A DNA stretch of 64,000 nt from Scyliorhinus canicula (Eukaryota): NCBI RefSeq assembly GCF_902713615.1, contig NC_052172.1:186001-250000 (forward strand), in the 5' to 3' direction. The position numbers and the translations under genes are program-made. The notes below the pieces were generated by a model. It had not been told where the DNA came from, made no database searches, and saw only the letters and a list, made by a program, of their open reading frames with translations. Shown one piece after another: positions 4,565 to 53,320 of the stretch. Within the stretch, counting starts at the first letter, position 1. Each line of letters begins with the position of its first letter.

Positions 4565-4951
4565 ATGGCTGACGAGAAGAAACCAACATCGAAAACAGCT
4601 TCCAAGAAAGGAGCCAAGAAAGTCATTAAGAAACCGGCAGGAAAGGGCGGCAAGAAGCGGCGAAAGTCGAGGAAGGAGAGTTACTCCATCTACATCTACA
4701 AAGTGATGAAGCAGGTTCACCCCGACACCGGCATCTCCTCCAAGGCCATGAGCATCATGAACTCGTTCGTCAGCGATATTTTCGAGCGTATCGCGGGTGA
4801 GGCTTCCCGCCTGGCCCATTACAACAAGCGCCACACCATCAGCTCCCGGGAGATCCAGACCGCCGTGCGCCTGCTGCTGCCCGGGGAACTGGCCAAGCAC
4901 GCCGTGTCGGAAGGGACAAAGGCGGTCACCAAGTACACCAGCTCCAAGTAA
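4565..4951 (+). CDS. H2B: Histone H2B, intact (128 aa)
   Basis: MADEKK...[21 protein letters not shown]...KYTSSK; stem-loop 4989-5004. Confidence 0.97.
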
Positions 4952-8240: not shown

Positions 8241-8973
8241 TTTAAAATTATTGAAGCTTCACAGGGTGGAACATGACCGATGTAAATATTTTGAGAAGAA
8301 TTGTAATGTGAATATTGAAATGTGTGTAATGTTCTCATTCTCCAATGGAAGAAATTCAAGTAAATCTGGACCTCTGGAGAAAATGTAAATATTATTGTAC
8401 GATACGATATTATTGTGATGACAATTTGAAATGTTTGACAATGTTTGTTTCAAGGGATTTTATAAATGTAGTATATTTTTGAAAATATATTGTATGCTTC
8501 TATGAAAAATGAATTCAGTCAGTGAAATATAAGTTTGCAGAAAGTGTGAGTTTGAGGGGCTGAATGGCAGTGTAATAACAAACAAGCTGCAGGCAATGGC
8601 TGCAGATTGAATATCTGATTGGGACAAACACACAGCTACAAATGTGATTGGTTGAGCCCTGGAGCGCAGGGCCACTTGCACCCACACACACACAGTCCCC
8701 CCAACACGGGCTCTATCGGAGGTTTTGCTCCAAATGTAATGACAGTGAAATGGGGAATATTCCCATTGATTCTCAATGCGGAATTGGTGCGGGGATCTGC
8801 GCATGTCCGGGGTAGCCCCACCCCTGCCGTTCGTCATTCTGCGATTGAGAGCGCATGCGCATCCCCTCCCCCACACACTCTCCTTTTGATGTGGAGATGC
8901 CGGCGTTGGACTGGGGTGAGCACAGTAAGAAGTCTTACAACACCAGGTTAAAGTCCAACAGGTTTGTTTCAAA

Positions 8974-9008
8974 CACGAGCTTTCGGAGCACGGCTCCTTC
9001 TTCAGGTG
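8974..9008 (-). ncRNA. Minimal type I hammerhead ribozyme motif in pLTR
   Basis: CAC-CTGAAGA-AGGAGCCGTGCTCC-GAAAGCTC-GTG: CUGANGA/GAAA core, stem II, palindromic AGCT stem III. Confidence 0.85.
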
Positions 9009-9825
9009 AATGGAAAGGCTTGTTCCAGAAATGTTTATATAGACACAGTCAGAGATGCCCCGGAATGCGAGCACCTGCAGGCAATCAAATCATCAAAGAT
9101 GCAGAGAGAGAGGTAACTCCAGGTTAAAGAGGTGTGAATTGTCCCAAGCCAGTTCAGTCGGTAGGCCTCTGCAAGTCCAGGCTTGTTGGTGGGGGCCGAA
9201 TGTAATGCGACATGAATCCCAGATCCCGGTTGAGTCCGCATTCATGCGTGCGGAACTTAGCTATAAGTTTTTGCTCAGCAATTTTGCGTTGTCGCGTCTC
9301 CTGAAGGCCTCCTTGTAGAATGCTGACCCGGAGATCAGAGGCTGAATGTCCTTGACTGCTGAAGTGTTCCCCAACTGGAAGGCGAGACCATGCAGACACT
9401 GCGACAACGAATAAACGGGCATTGTGCGACTATCAACAGGCAGGACTGTTCCCTTCCAGTTGGGGAACACTTCAGCAGTCAAGGACATTCAGCCTCTGAT
9501 CTCCGGGTCAGCATTCTACAAGGAGGCCTTCAGGAGACGCGACAACGCAAAATTGCTGAGCAAAAACTTATAGCTAAGTTCCGCACGCATGAATGCGGAC
9601 TCAACCGGGATCTGGGATTCATGTCGCATTACATTCGGCCCCCACCAACAAGCCTGGACTTGCAGAGGCCTACCGACTGAACTGGCTTGGGACAATTCAC
9701 ACCTCTTTAACCTGGAGTTACCTCTCTCTCTGCATCTTTGATGATTTGATTGCCTGCAGGTGCTCGCATTCCGGGGCATCTCTGACTGTGTCTATATAAA
9801 CATTCCTGGAACAAGCCTTTCCATT

Positions 9826-9860
9826 CACCTGAAGAAGGAGCCGTGCTCCGAAAGCTCGTG
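9826..9860 (+). ncRNA. Minimal type I hammerhead ribozyme motif in pLTR
   Basis: Identical motif, plus strand. Confidence 0.85.
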
Positions 9861-11329
9861 TTTGAAACAAACCTGTTGGACTTTAACCTGGTGTTGTAAG
9901 ACTTCTTACTGTACTCTCCTTTTGCTCAGTGAGTGGAGACGCTTTGTTCAAACTGAGTGAAATGTCAGGGCCCAGGTCAGCGAGGAAACAGCGTTCTCAT
10001 TGCAGCAGCTCATCCATTTGGGAGTGTGAGCAAAGAGGCTCAGAGATCATTACTGACTCGGGGGGAGTTCAGGGACAATCGGGGGCTGTTTGCAAGAGGC
10101 GCAGCGGGAGCCCCATCTTGTTCCGGGAATTGGAGTGAGCGGGGGTAAGGAAGAGCTCTTTCTGGGCCTGGCTTATTGTCTGATTCTGGGGCAGGATTTG
10201 GACAGTATTTTCTTTATTTTACTGATTATCAGTTGAAAGAATTGATTGATCTATCATTGGCCTCATCGGACCCTGATTTACAAGAGATATGTGTTCTTCC
10301 CCCTCGTTCAACAGATGAAGAGATGAGTTCCAAGATGATGATTCCTCAGCAACATGAATGTGCCGCCGTCTCCTTCTAACTGACAGTAAGTACAATATTA
10401 ATCCAACATTGCAGAGACACAGACACAACATCAGCTCCACCATCACAGAGAACAGAAGCAGTCACACTTACATTGAGCTCAACTCCCAGGTAAACATGTC
10501 CAATCCAACAGTCCTCATTATCCAATTGAAGAAATTCAAGTAAATCTGGAACTCTGGAGAAAATGTAAATATTATTTACAGATACACGAGAGGACAGGTG
10601 GGATAATTTTCCACAATTCACCCCTACTCTCTCATGGAATGTTGGATCAACTTGTTGCGACAACAGCGTTTCATCTGTTAAGTAATCAGTATAGTATTAA
10701 TTAGGCTATAGATTCAGCAATCAATGTGCAAGGATCCATTTGCACTATTTTGTAACTTTCTTCATTTAAAATATATCAGAAGCAAAGCACTTGAATAAGG
10801 CATTAACAGAAAAATGATACATTTAAATAGTTCTCAAAGGACAATTATCAGATTGTAAGGCCATCCTTTCATCTCACAAGTTGTGAACCTTTGGTACAAG
10901 TAAAAGGTTGGATAGTACAGATGATTGTAAAGTGCCAAATTAATCATAAACTTCTATCAAGACACCTCCCAAAACAAAATATTAAATTCCAATCCAAATA
11001 TTGTGCACAATCTCAGATATAACAGTGCAGTACATGGAAATAGATCATTTGACATATCAATGTCATCAGTAAAAGTAAGAATGGAAGATCAATACTGAAC
11101 AGAATGTTCACCATTAACTCACAAAACAGATATTGACAAGTGCAGAAAATACAATAAAATCACGCACTTCAGAGAGGTGAACAGATAGAGATTAAATGCA
11201 GAATCCCATAACAGAGATAGACAGCTTAGAAAGCAAGCACACAGAACAGAGGCAGAGAGTTACAGAATCAAACTGATTTTTCTCGAACTCTTGACCCATA
11301 ACAGATACAGACAGCTACAGTGGAAAACA

Positions 11330-18903: not shown

Positions 18904-19290
18904 ATGGCTGACGAGAAGAAACCAACATCGAAAGCAGCTGCCAAGAAGGGAGCCAAGAAAGTCATTAAGAAACCGGCAGTAAAGGGCGGCAAGAAGCGGC
19001 GAAGGTCGAGGAAGGAGAGTTACTCCATCTACATCTACAAAGTGATGAAGCAGGTTCACCCCGACACCGGCATCTCCTCCAAGGCCATGAGCATCATGAA
19101 CTCGTTCGTCAACGATATTTTCGAGCGTATCGCGGGTGAGGCTTCCCGCCTGGCCCATTACAACAAGCGCAGCACCATCAGCTCCCGGGAGATCCAGACC
19201 GCCGTGCGCCTGCTGCTGCCCGGGGAACTGGCCAAGCACGCCGTGTCGGAAGGGACAAAGGCGGTGACCAAGTACACCAGCTCCAAGTAA
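18904..19290 (+). CDS. H2B: Histone H2B, intact (128 aa)
   Basis: Canonical H2B; promoter as above; stem-loop 19328-19343. Confidence 0.97.
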
Positions 19291-46030: not shown

Positions 46031-46373
46031 ATGTGGAGATGCCGTCATTGGACTGGGGTGAGCACAGTAAGAAGTCTTATAACACCAGGTTAAAGTCCAA
46101 CAGGTTTGTTTCAAACACAAGCTTTCGGAGCACTGCTCCTTCCTAAGGTGAATGGAGAGGTATGTTCCAGAAACATTTATACAGTACAGACAAAGTCAGA
46201 GATGCTGGACAATTCTTGGAATGCGAGCATTTGCAGGTAATCAAATCATTACAGATCCAGAAATAGGGGGTGATCCCAGGTTGAAGACGTGTGAATTGTC
46301 TCAAGCCAGGAAAGCTGGTAGGATTTTGCAATCCAGGCAGATGGTGGGGGGTGAATGTAATGCGACATGAATC
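46031..46373 (-). mobile_element. PLE pLTR of a related subfamily; hammerhead core mutated (46116-46150)
   Basis: Same terminal ~120 bp as 8889; core reads CTTAGGA instead of CTGANGA. Confidence 0.85.
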
Positions 46374-46379
46374 CTCTAA

Positions 46380-47998: not shown

Positions 47999-48319
<321 letters not shown>

Positions 48320-49287: not shown

Positions 49288-50323
49288 TCACTTCTCTTAT
49301 AGCTTCAGGAGGAATGGCGGTGCACACATTGCTGATTGGTTATCTGAACAACATTGTGGAGCCGGCTACAAAGTGACCAATCAGATATCTGTTTGAAGCA
49401 CCAATCAGGAGAACCCACGGTGTTGAGGGCGGAAAGTTTGGGCGGCAAATGTTCAGATTCCAACCGAATATTTATTTCAAATCTTAAATGGGCGCGAAAA
49501 GATATAACAGATAAAATTGAATAAAAAATGTGACTGAATCATTTGAGTATAAGATTGTTAGATTCTCTCTCTTTCCCGCGTCTAGTTTCCCATTATCTGT
49601 CAGTTTCTGATTTTGTCTCTGTAACTGACAACAAACCCGAAATAAATTAAACCAAAATAATGCGGAGGCTGCAAATGTGAATTAAAGAGAAAATGCTGGA
49701 TCAACTCAGCGTGTCTGGTATCATCTGTGGAGAGAAACGTTTAGGATCTGTAGAAGGGGAACTGACTCCACACGTTTAGTCTGGCTGTTGTTTAAAACGC
49801 TCTCAGCCGCCGACAGTGTCTAATTCACAGCCATCTGCAAACATAATAACATTTATTCATATTGTAGACTGCTGCCGCTTTCTTGGTGTTAAAAGTGGAG
49901 TGAGCAGTTTGGAGCTAGTGTCAGTATTGAAATGGAGTTTACCCACACCACCGGGGTGCTCTCGATCATTGAGTGTGAACATGAACATAAATGGAAAGAG
50001 AGTAATTTGGGAGACTTAACACAAATGCTACGGGAGGTATTGGAGTTCTGTTCTCTCTCCAAATCCAGCCACAGCAGCCGAGTACGAAGCGGCGACCGAG
50101 CATCACTAAATGATGGGATTTAATAAACAACGTACGAAGATCGACATGACGATAACTCGGCATTATACAGGATGTTGTTGTAGTGAAACACTATTTAATC
50201 GGATCTGGATATTCATAATAGAAATAAACGGATAATTTAATGTATGATGGTTTGGCTGCTTTACAGAAGTTGTGGGTGGCTCTTAAAAGAGCCGTTGGGT
50301 TTTGGACGAGTTTGAGAACTGTT

Positions 50324-50710
50324 TTACTTGGAGCTGGTGTACTTGGTCACCGCCTTTGTCCCTTCCGACACGGCGTGCTTGGCCAGTTCCCCGGGCAGCA
50401 GCAGGCGCACGGCGGTCTGGATCTCCCGGGAGCTGATGGTGCTGCGCTTGTTGTAATGGGCCAGGCGGGAAGCCTCACCCGCGATACGCTCGAAAATATC
50501 GCTGACGAACGAGTTCATGATGCTCATGGCCTTGGAGGAGATGCCGGTGTCGGGGTGAACCTGCTTCATCACTTTGTAGATGTAGATGGAGTAACTCTCC
50601 TTCCTCGACTTTCGCCGCTTCTTGCCGCCCTTTACTGCCGGTTTCTTAATGACTTTCTTGGCTCCCTTCTTGGCAGCTGGTTTCGATGTTGGTTTCTTCT
50701 CGTCAGCCAT
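50324..50710 (-). CDS. H2B: Histone H2B, intact ORF (128 aa), promoter split by PLE
   Basis: Canonical H2B; stem-loop 50278-50293. Confidence 0.96.
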
Positions 50711-50768
50711 CTTCAGTTTCACCCAGAAATAAAGCAAACCCCTTCCGAGCGCTGATTAAATAGACAGA

Positions 50769-50803
50769 CACGAGCTTTCGGAGCACGGCTCCTTCTTCAG
50801 GTG
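50769..50803 (-). ncRNA. Minimal hammerhead ribozyme motif
   Basis: Same 35-nt motif; forms the very end of the insertion. Confidence 0.85.
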
Positions 50804-52055
50804 AATGGAAAGGCTTGTTCCAGAAATGTTTATATAGACACAGTCAGAGATGCCCCGGAATGCGAGCACCTGCAGGCAATCAAATCATCAAAGATGCAGA
50901 GAGAGAGGTAACTCCAGGTTAAAGAGGTGTGAATTGTCCCAAGCCAGTTCAGTCGGTAGGCCTCTGCAAGTCCAGGCTTGTTGGTGGGGGCCGAATGTAA
51001 TGCGACATGAATCCCAGATCCCGGTTGAGTCCGCATTCATGCGTGCGGAACTTAGCTATAAGTTTTTGCTCAGCAATTTTGCGTTGTCGCGTCTCCTGAA
51101 GGCCTCCTTGTAGAATGCTGACCCGGAGATCAGAGGCTGAATGTCCTTGACTGCTGAAGTGTTCCCCAACTGGAAGGGAACAGTCCTGCCTGTTGATAGT
51201 CGCACGATGCCCGTTTATTCGTTGTCGCAGTGTCTGCATGGTCTCGCCAATGTACCACGCTTCGGCAGGGTTTTGTGGTGTTGTGGTTGCTGTTCTGAAG
51301 GCTGGGTAATTTGCTGCAAACAATGGTTTGTTTGAGGTTGCGCAGTTGTTTGAAGGCCAGTAGTGGGGGTGTGGGGATGACCTTGGCAAGATGTCCATCC
51401 TCGCTGATGATGTGTTGGAGGCTGCGAAGAAGATGTCGTAGTTTCTCCGCCCCAGGTAATCTCTGCAAGACATGCCAGATCATCGACATGGACACCACCA
51501 TTACACGTGGAAACACCACCCACCAGGTACGCGGCGCATACTCGTGCGACTCGACCAATGTAGTCTACCTCATACGCTGCAGGAAAGGATGTCCCGAAGC
51601 GTGGTACATTGGCGAGACCATGCAGACACTGCGACAACGAATAAACGGGCATCGTGCGACTATCAACAGGCAGGACTGTTCCCTTCCAGTTGGGGAACAC
51701 TTCAGCAGTCAAGGACATTCAGCCTCTGATCTCCGGGTCAGCATTCTACAAGGAGGCCTTCAGGAGACGCGACAACGCAAAATTGCTGAGCAAAAACTTA
51801 TAGCTAAGTTCCGCACGCATGAATGCGGACTCAACCGGGATCTGGGATTCATGTCGCATTACATTCGGCCCCCACCAACAAGCCTGGACTTGCAGAGGCC
51901 TACCGACTGAACTGGCTTGGGACAATTCACACCTCTTTAACCTGGAGTTACCTCTCTCTCTGCATCTTTGATGATTTGATTGCCTGCAGGTGCTCGCATT
52001 CCGGGGCATCTCTGACTGTGTCTATATAAACATTTCTGGAACAAGCCTTTCCATT

Positions 52056-52090
52056 CACCTGAAGAAGGAGCCGTGCTCCGAAAGCTCGTG
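52056..52090 (+). ncRNA. Minimal hammerhead ribozyme motif
   Basis: CACCTGAAGAAGGAGCCGTGCTCCGAAAGCTCGTG. Confidence 0.85.
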
Positions 52091-52177
52091 TTTGAAACAA
52101 ACCTGTTGGACTTTAACCTGGTGTTGTAAGACTTCTTACTGTGCTCACCCCAGTCCAACGCCGGCATCTCCACATCA

Positions 52178-52330
52178 TAAATAGACAGAGCCTCACATCT
52201 ATGCTAATGAGGAATGGGGAAAGGAATGATTGTGATTGGACAATGTGAAAATGAGACCAGCCAGTTATGTTCTGTTTATTTTATTGGATATCTGAACAGA
52301 CCAATCAGATTTAGGATTTTCCACCAATCA
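52178..52330 (-). promoter_or_regulatory. Displaced H2B promoter (TATA copy, octamer variant, CCAAT boxes)
   Basis: ATGCTAAT at 52201-52208, ATTGG at ~52235 and ~52283. Confidence 0.8.
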
Positions 52331-52395
52331 GTAACCTCCTTACGACAAACAGCAAATGCATTTCAGAAAGAATGTCTCCAGTTCAAGTTTGTCAG

Positions 52396-52530
52396 TTACT
52401 CACTCTGATACAGTGTGTAAGTGTGGGATTTACTCACTCTCTGATGCAGTGTGAGTGTGGGATTTACTCACTCTCTGTTGCAGTGTGTGAGTATGGAATT
52501 TACTGACACTCTGATACAGTGTGTGAGTGT
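52396..52530 (-). repeat. Short array of the 36-bp minisatellite
   Basis: Reverse complement of the 3380 family, ~4 units. Confidence 0.88.
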
Positions 52531-52989
52531 CGGGGTGAACCGGCTTTCTAATCTGTGATTGGAGATATTAATCTAGTATTTCATTTCTACTAGCTTCATG
52601 TCAATTTTATTTTGCGTGCCATCATTTGGTGACTATCTTATTCTATTTTTGTCATATTCGTACCGTAGTAAATGCTGGCTGCACTTTTAATTTGTCAATT
52701 TATTATGTGTCAATTTGGGTTTACCTGTATTTCCAATGTAGAAGGAAACACCTTACACTTTATCTGTAATTTGTGGACAGTGAATGGGATCACTGCAAAC
52801 CCATTACAGTCTCATATGGGATGGTTTTGCTCATTTAATATTGAGCTGTCAGTTTCCAGTTTGTGAATCAGTATTTTCTGCTGTACAGCTGTCTCATTGT
52901 CTATTTTCTCTCCACAGGTTAGTTCTGCCATGGATGGAAAGTCGTTTTTCTCCTGTACCTGTTAAATACGGGAAGTGAATGTGTATTAA

Positions 52990-53320
52990 GGGCAGCACGG
53001 TAGCATTGTGAGAGCTACAATCCCGGGTTTCAGGTTCGATTCCCGGCTTCGGTCACTGTCTGTGCGGAGTCTGCACATCCTCCCCGTGTGTGTGTGGGTT
53101 TCCTCTGTGTGCTACGGTTTCCTCCCACAGTCCAAAGATGTGCAGGTTAGGGGGATTGGCCATGCTAAATTGTCCTTAGTGTCCAAAATTGCCCTTAATG
53201 TTGGGTGGAGTTACTGGGTTATGGGGATAGGGTGGAGGTGTGGACCTTGGGTAGGGTGTTCTTTACAGGAGCCGGTGCGGACTCGATGGGCCGAATAGCC
53301 TCCTTCGGCACTGTAAATTC
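52990..53320 (+). mobile_element. HE1-like SINE
   Basis: GGGCAGCACGGTAGC head and full body. Confidence 0.88.

Follow-up and report, generated by a model that had tools for sequence, protein, structure and literature searches.

The question raised by this locus is what becomes of a histone gene when a retrotransposon enters its TATA box, and what the inserted DNA tells about its own making. The gene concerned encodes histone H2B of the catshark Scyliorhinus canicula and lies on the minus strand of a 64,000-nucleotide stretch of contig NC_052172.1 (assembly GCF_902713615.1, forward-strand positions 186,001 to 250,000), which is referred to below as the window and to which all coordinates refer. 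Within the TATA box of this intact gene resides an insert of 1409 bp (50769-52177), bracketed by a 12-bp perfect direct repeat TAAATAGACAGA at 50757-50768 and 52178-52189 (repeat family D4). Judged from its sequence, the insert consists of the 3' ends of two copies of a Penelope-like element (PLE), both 5'-truncated and joined head to head. We consider it probable that a young shark PLE was inserted into the TATA box of one of several H2B copies, depriving it of most of its S-phase activation, and that the event was nearly neutral.

The insertion site and the ancestral promoter

The empty site was rebuilt by deleting the insert together with one copy of the repeat, and the resulting sequence was aligned in the H2B sense with two paralog promoters, those of the genes at 18904 and 4565. 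The rebuilt promoter proved to be identical to both paralogs from approximately -140 to the ATG and very similar to them over about 250 bp; this base-for-base match of the insert-free sequence identifies the event as an insertion with target-site duplication and provides the exact ancestral promoter. In the H2B sense the latter comprises four CCAAT boxes, two of them inverted and two direct, followed by the octamer-like element ATTAGCAT, which departs from ATTTGCAT at one position, alike in all three paralogs, and by TCTGTCTATTTAATC, which includes the TATA box; a leader of about 50 nt extends from this box to the ATG. TATTTA lies within the 12 bp that were duplicated. The proximal copy together with the following native A reads TATTTAA, as in the paralogs, with native sequence throughout after it; in the distal copy, which runs on into the element, the sequence is TATTTAT. 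Since the core of the TATA box lies within the duplicated target, the gene keeps a complete core promoter, namely TATTTAA, the start region and the 5' untranslated region (UTR), and the octamer-like and CCAAT elements, with the second TATA-like copy, have been moved 1409 bp upstream. A preliminary description of this locus had the PLE separating the octamer/CCAAT module from H2B by 1.4 kb with one TATA copy left on each side, which is confirmed by the target-site duplication and by the empty-site alignment.

A preference of the element for AT-rich targets, or for TATA boxes in particular, was considered and rejected: only the bottom-strand nick is AT-rich (TATTTA^AT). As the three target-site duplications found in the window have no common motif, TATA targeting by the PLE is not claimed.

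Identity and anatomy of the insert

The two arms of the insert (segment C of each copy, Table 1) are complementary at 497 of 497 positions (inverted repeat I1; blastn), and the arm alignment agrees with the earlier proposal that the gene-proximal arm runs in the H2B sense. The anatomy was resolved by mapping a relative, P0001, onto the insert by tblastn. The right copy extends from amino acid 109 of P0001 to the stop codon (51455-51910) and continues as 3' UTR to 52177, while the left copy consists of amino acids 38-107 (51471 down to 51265) joined to amino acid 156 through the stop codon and the 3' UTR (51263 down to 50769). With rc denoting the reverse complement, the layout of the insert is rc(C)-rc(A)-B-C-D, where D is an 87-nt extension present on the right side only; the left copy, which has no such tail, ends 3-4 nt beyond the predicted cut of the hammerhead described below. 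The right copy opens (segment B) with precisely what the left copy lacks (amino acids 108-155 of P0001). According to the same mapping, the insert is 5'-truncated and holds no codons of the reverse transcriptase (RT).

The assignment to PLEs is based on both domain content and architecture. The GIY-YIG domain was recognized by Pfam on the right copy with E=5.4e-4 and 20.6 bits, just below the cutoff of 22.6. The 154-aa C-terminal translation retrieved 50 proteins at E<=1e-3, the named ones among them originating from Mustelus, Heptranchias and Chiloscyllium, all sharks, and an exhaustive HMMER search recovered 3478 relatives of the C-terminal region of the insert. In the relatives P0051, P0098, P0159 and P0169 (799-921 aa) RVT_1 lies upstream and the homologous region is C-terminal, the C-terminal GIY-YIG of P0159 and P0169 being above the Pfam cutoff. 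An RT followed by a C-terminal GIY-YIG is what we take to be the canonical architecture of endonuclease-positive PLEs. In addition, the insert is built as a pseudo-long terminal repeat (pLTR), having inverted 497-nt arms and an extension at one end only, like another insertion of the family at 8887-9919, and a hammerhead motif is located at both of its outward ends.

The complete lack of differences between the arms over 497 bp, together with 99.3-100% identity to the copy at 8887-9919, points to a very recent insertion and to a family that is active now or was so until recently; alternatively, the identity of the arms could have been kept by gene conversion between the arms of the palindrome. 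No paper on PLEs in the catshark was found in our literature search.

A putative course of integration can be outlined from this anatomy. It would have begun with a staggered 12-bp break at the H2B TATA box, each broken strand then priming reverse transcription of the PLE RNA, which would produce two 5'-truncated 3' ends lying head to head. The right end would have been started at the far reverse-transcription start site, yielding the 87-nt tail, and the left end 3-4 nt past the hammerhead. The coincidence of segments A and B, i.e., the lack in the left copy of exactly those codons that open the right one, suggests a template jump, in which the top-strand cDNA would have passed to the first free stretch of the RNA that was being copied from the other side, as in a variant of twin priming. 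With the arms identical, the build of the insert appears to record one PLE integration event, with both strands primed, two reverse-transcription start sites and a template jump, in agreement with the in vitro work on the Anolis PLE published in 2024. The insertion is a clean natural specimen, whose empty site the paralogs define to the single base.

The hammerhead motif

Read by hand, the left arm ends in a minimal hammerhead consisting of the helix I 5' strand CAC, CUGAAGA, an extra A, GGAGC-CGU-GCUCC, GAAA, GC, U and C17. The latter corresponds to position 50772, the motif spanning 50800-50772 on the minus strand, and the predicted cut falls at 50772/50771, 61 nt before the first base of the start codon (50710). 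With Rfam, no hammerhead was matched at the gathering threshold, nor at E<=10 on 50650-52400; the motif is devoid of the helix III hairpin that the Rfam models expect. After this null result, a manual descriptor and cross-species comparison were used; the relaxed descriptor of the minimal hammerhead ribozyme (min-HHR), run over both strands of the window, matched only at the five PLE ends.

The same module is present in Heptranchias (L001), in Chiloscyllium (L002) and in two metagenome contigs (L005 and L007), and no hammerhead was detected within the available DNA of L003, L004, L006 and L008. Changes across the relatives are limited to N7, loop II and H17, and to two compensatory pairs in helix II. 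Pairing is kept in 45 of 45 cells, as against 24-51% when the partners are slid, a comparison that, coming from a small sample, is indicative only. The U3-A8 core is covariant in L007; every relative retains the extra nucleotide, four sequences out of five have G10.1-C11.1 (the remaining one having G-U), and the palindromic AGCU is present in all five. In L005 the 60 nt preceding the hammerhead contain no TATA box, and this hammerhead looks like a 5'-truncated fragment. In isolation, the 52-nt segment folds as a hammerhead, and the cofolded dimer is predicted at -30 to -33 kcal/mol versus -22 to -25 kcal/mol for two monomers.

The conservation among sharks, accompanied by compensatory changes, argues for a genuine, selected PLE motif, and, as far as its letters can tell, the motif is a match to the published min-HHRs of PLEs in every sequence feature by which these are recognized. 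The preliminary description spoke of a complete hammerhead ending the arm, with cleavage at about 50772, some 60 nt from the ATG. Its position, core, helix II and minimal palindromic helix III stand as described; the word complete has to be qualified for helix I, which is short (3 bp and two further pairs), and there is no Rfam match.

A TATA box upstream of the hammerhead

In both arms the sequence TATATAAA is located 36 nt upstream of C3 of the hammerhead, which in the left arm places it on the minus strand at 50836-50829, exactly where a TATA box of the arm had been proposed. A TATA-like hexamer is present 34-44 nt upstream of position 3 in the young and old catshark copies, L001, L002 and L007, the 3' UTR around it being barely alignable between lineages; the chance of finding such a hexamer in the 11-nt placement window is about 0.7% per lineage. 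The earlier designation of this sequence as the pLTR TATA thus gains support from a box at similar spacing in five copies or lineages. The A of CCATTCAC lies 30 nt downstream of the first T of the TATA, and its CA step is kept in five of five sequences. From this we infer a predicted transcript start at about A50806 within CCATTCAC; an RNA begun there would have the hammerhead at its very 5' end. The pLTR is known to harbour the PLE transcription start (PMC8557442), and transcripts begin there in both Penelope and Chlamys (PMC8557442, PMC2377424). Our literature search revealed no report of a TATA box ahead of PLE hammerheads. That shark PLEs retain a TATA some 36 nt ahead of the hammerhead, a spacing that would set the transcript start at helix I, may be a small, testable addition to PLE biology.

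Consequences for the H2B gene and alternative explanations

The gene has the features of a replication-dependent histone gene, i.e., an intronless histone-fold open reading frame (ORF), a 3' stem-loop and an octamer/CCAAT/TATA promoter, the last being split by the insert. In mammals, S-phase transcription of H2B requires the octamer beside the TATA box as its Oct-1/OCA-S site (PMC5706932). After its displacement, the studied H2B would lose most of the S-phase-coupled activation, and some residual transcription may be driven by the bare core promoter or by the PLE TATA; as other intact H2B copies exist, the event would be close to neutral. Several points weigh against this explanation. Upstream elements may act over 1.4 kb, in which case the gene would still be S-phase regulated, and the octamer-like element of the shark, one mismatch from the mammalian consensus, is assumed to function as it does in mammals. 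The tail of the catshark element comprises 87 nt versus the 30-40 nt described for canonical PLEs. Finally, the promoter of Penelope in D. virilis is internal and TATA-less (PMC2377424), which leaves conservation among sharks as the ground for a TATA-driven PLE promoter.

The PLE module might itself have taken over the gene. The TATA box stands at a fixed distance upstream of the hammerhead, conserved across shark PLEs, and in the left arm this module is in the H2B orientation, 75 bp upstream of the H2B TATA; transcription from it would follow the pLTR starts cited above, and a capped mRNA beginning at about 50806 would carry the hammerhead in a 96-nt leader with no upstream ATG and no poly(A) signal. 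The PLE TATA and initiator would then be the main H2B promoter, and expression would be of the PLE type instead of the S-phase type. We regard this as rather unlikely, given that a 5'-truncated copy may lack enhancer-like sequences and that young transposon copies are often silenced. Another reading supposes that the displaced S-phase promoter, which is intact and retains a TATA-like copy (the distal TATTTAT), fires into the insert, so that a 497-bp hairpin RNA feeds small-RNA or double-stranded RNA pathways directed against the PLE and H2B becomes untranslatable. The predicted read-through leader of 1448 nt does fold at -1183 kcal/mol with the arms fully paired and contains 26 upstream ATGs; on the other hand, the start region downstream of the distal TATA has been replaced by PLE sequence, an AATAAA at 51219-51214 in the H2B sense could terminate read-through transcripts early, and a function of the hairpin RNA beyond that of a by-product is pure conjecture, all of which makes this reading improbable. 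Somewhat more improbable still is the broader conjecture that the S-phase promoter makes the 497-bp hairpin at each division as a source of PLE-restraining small RNA, while the TATA/hammerhead module serves as a portable promoter over H2B.

The ribozyme might also act on the transcripts of the gene, cutting the H2B-sense RNA after C50772 and releasing, as a significant product, an uncapped H2B RNA with a 5'-OH end and a 61-nt leader. In favour of this, the motif possesses the core, the extra nucleotide, G10.1-C11.1 and the palindromic AGCU, which are conserved across sharks, and in isolation the segment adopts the hammerhead fold, with the dimer preferred over two monomers. However, single min-HHRs display no detectable self-cleavage in vitro (PMC4209133), and the hammerhead of the Anolis PLE needs the PLE protein, no RNA-seq ends being seen at its cut site (PMC11167929). 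The H2B-sense RNA carries one sense hammerhead only, and in the read-through RNA every nucleotide of it is paired with the other arm in the 497-bp duplex. For the fused RNA of 107 nt, the fold of lowest energy has the core base-paired with the H2B 5' UTR and does not exceed shuffled sequences in stability (z-score about 0), unlike the native PLE context, which folds as a hammerhead with a tail hairpin. Since monomers barely cleave and the motif is buried in the read-through duplex, a ribozyme-cut uncapped mRNA is very unlikely, and hammerhead cleavage of H2B transcripts would be at most a minor side reaction. There is the least room for doubting the insert itself as an assembly artefact, e.g., one from a chimeric fold-back read. 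The perfect identity of the arms would fit an artefact, and assemblies are known to have difficulty with complex PLE structures (PMC8557442), but the clean 12-bp duplication at a site exactly matching the paralogs, the asymmetric build with a tail at one end and internal segments A and B, which is not expected of a fold-back, and the second palindromic copy, differently truncated and with a duplication of its own, render this explanation extremely improbable.

Taken together, the outcomes can be ranked, with reduced S-phase expression as the most likely, PLE-driven H2B as plausible, hairpin RNA as possible and ribozyme-cut mRNA as unlikely. Of the outcomes put forward in the preliminary description (PLE hairpin RNA, silencing, drive by the pLTR and a ribozyme-cut RNA), the last has the weakest standing. 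The locus is an ordinary case of a known class of retrotransposon having entered a redundant gene copy, with small biological stakes. If the locus is expressed, it would offer a convenient in vivo test of cleavage by a lone min-HHR.

Table 1. Coordinates of the H2B gene, its divided promoter and the PLE insert in the window
Feature	Position	Strand	Evidence and remarks
Histone 3' stem-loop of H2B	50254-50298	-	Rfam RF00032, 37.8 bits, above gathering threshold
H2B coding sequence, intact, replication-dependent, 128 aa	50324-50710	-	ORF; Pfam Histone PF00125, E=2.3e-22; paralog alignment
H2B core promoter and 5' UTR, unchanged	50711-50768	-	Identical to paralogs; TATTTAA 50762-50756; left copy of target-site duplication 50757-50768
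Left PLE copy, segment C	50769-51265	-	C-terminal GIY-YIG codons, stop 50951-50949, 3' UTR, TATA, hammerhead; inverted repeat I1, blastn, tblastn with P0001 aa 156-244
Minimal hammerhead, left copy (predicted)	50772-50808	-	H2B sense; descriptor scan, isolated fold, cross-species pair counts
PLE 3' UTR (pLTR) TATA TATATAAA	50829-50836	-	36 nt upstream of hammerhead C3; equivalent TATA-like box in four other lineages or copies
Left PLE copy, segment A (P0001 aa 38-107)	51266-51471	-	tblastn; fused directly to segment C, aa 108-155 missing
Right PLE copy, segment B (from P0001 aa 109)	51455-51593	+	tblastn; Pfam GIY-YIG; CxxC linker and start of GIY-YIG
Right PLE copy, segment C	51594-52090	+	Identical to left arm; stop 51908-51910; TATATAAA 52023-52030; hammerhead 52051-52090, C17 52087
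87-nt tail	52091-52177	+	Right end only; hairpin in native-context fold
Target-site duplication, right copy	52178-52189	.	Distal TATA is TATTTAT in H2B sense
Displaced upstream H2B promoter module	52190-52330	-	Alignment to paralog promoters; octamer-like ATTAGCAT 52201-52208; four CCAAT/ATTGG boxes 52235-52328

Other copies of the PLE family in the window

The second insertion occupies 8876-9923, where two 3' ends abut head to head at 9381/9382 with no spacer. The insertion proper (8887-9919) is flanked by an 11-bp duplication CTCTCCTTTTG and has a full tail at its left end, the right end being cut at about position 59 of the tail. A further fragment of 93 nt, comprising the hammerhead and part of the tail in minus sense, is found at 29369-29487 within a tRNA gene; it is accompanied by a 13-14-bp duplication GTGGTATAGTGGTG, and the Rfam tRNA call (29468-29539) begins inside it. 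An older PLE 3' end, in minus sense and 78-83% identical, is located at 46031-46374. It retains the TATA, helix II and the tail, and its hammerhead core is mutated (CUUAGGA) with the loss of G5, as expected for a decaying copy. The 3' ends of the copies in the window fall into three classes, those terminating after GCUCGUGU, those terminating after CUUACUGU and those with the full tail.

The tail (52091-52177) is kept between distant sharks (compared with L001, L002 and L007), with the core GUUGGACU..AACCUGGUGUUGU, and forms a hairpin in the native RNA fold. It is a candidate counterpart of the stem-loop at which the Anolis PLE begins reverse transcription. An 11-nt identity of the tail with the H2B coding sequence (inverted repeat I2) was estimated to be at chance level and set aside.

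The histone cluster and the surroundings of the gene

The window is part of a histone cluster, in which H4 genes are situated at 653-342 (-) and 48008-48319 (+), an H2A gene at 49239-48850 (-) and three intact H2B genes at 4565 (+), 18904 (+) and 50710-50324 (-). Histone 3' stem-loops were detected by Rfam for five genes, including the studied H2B. The ORF of the latter differs from that of the 18904 paralog by three bases, and the gene has its own short variant of the 3' UTR. A fourth H2B-like ORF at 2486-2842 is devoid of the first 10 codons and is 92% identical to the other H2Bs; since the region upstream of it is unrelated to the common H2B promoter, this ORF probably represents a copy that was truncated or disrupted.

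Directly upstream of the displaced promoter module, at 52379-52533, there are 4-5 tandem copies of a 34-36-nt unit (repeat families D1-D3), none of which occurs in the paralog promoters. A stretch of 20 nt at 52527-52546 (repeat D5) are 95% identical to the complement of the H2B coding strand (50547-50566) and may be a remnant of another H2B copy or a chance resemblance. A sequence resembling a short interspersed nuclear element, with a tRNA-related head, lies at 52985-53165, about 800 bp upstream of the H2B promoter.

Comparison with known systems

Among the hallmarks of PLEs, Craig et al. list the frequent occurrence of 5'-truncated copies in inverted orientation and a tail confined to one end (PMC8557442). 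As demonstrated by Frangieh et al., the protein of the Anolis PLE nicks and extends both DNA strands with a preference for AT-rich cuts, and reverse transcription starts from two internal RNA sites, the spacing of which gives the tail (PMC11167929). The catshark insert resembles the canonical endonuclease-positive PLEs (Penelope/Poseidon/Neptune) in the C-terminal GIY-YIG, with RT and GIY-YIG in full-length relatives, in the heavy 5' truncation, in the inverted truncated copy forming terminal inverted repeats, in the one-end extension and in the pLTR hammerhead, and its integration is consistent with nicking and extension of both strands (PMC8557442, PMC11167929). It differs from them in that the RT part is absent from the copy and that the internal deletion of the left copy matches the start of the right one.

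The central part of the insert, rc(A) followed by B-C-D, where A and B are adjacent in the source RNA, is like the twin-priming inversions of human LINE-1 insertions that Ostertag and Kazazian reportedly described in 2001. Unlike these, the inverted segment is preceded by a second 3'-end copy (C), and the enzyme belongs to a different family; the second copy of segment C would need a second priming event at the 3' region of the element and a template jump.

The hammerhead shares with the metazoan min-HHRs of PLEs described by Cervera and De la Pena (2014, PMC4209133) the CUGANGA and GAAA motifs, the unpaired nucleotide between A9 and G10.1, the G10.1-C11.1 pair, the 1-bp helix III within the AGCU palindrome, the short helix I, the covariation of U3-A8 in a relative and the arrangement of motifs on opposite strands a few hundred bases apart. 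In contrast to them, helix II comprises 5 bp versus 7-8 bp in the Schistosoma families, the 3' strand of helix I of the left copy is partly made of the host H2B promoter, and the motif, which no Rfam family detects, is known here from its sequence.

As to the site, insertions of P elements into Drosophila heat-shock promoters are reported (PMC2793543). The likeness consists in the position of the insertion, which in a strongly expressed gene whose promoter is open comes to separate the core promoter from the activating elements upstream of it. The PLE belongs to another class of elements, and the present locus is a single case in a window whose three target-site duplications, having no common motif, give no sign of a targeting preference.

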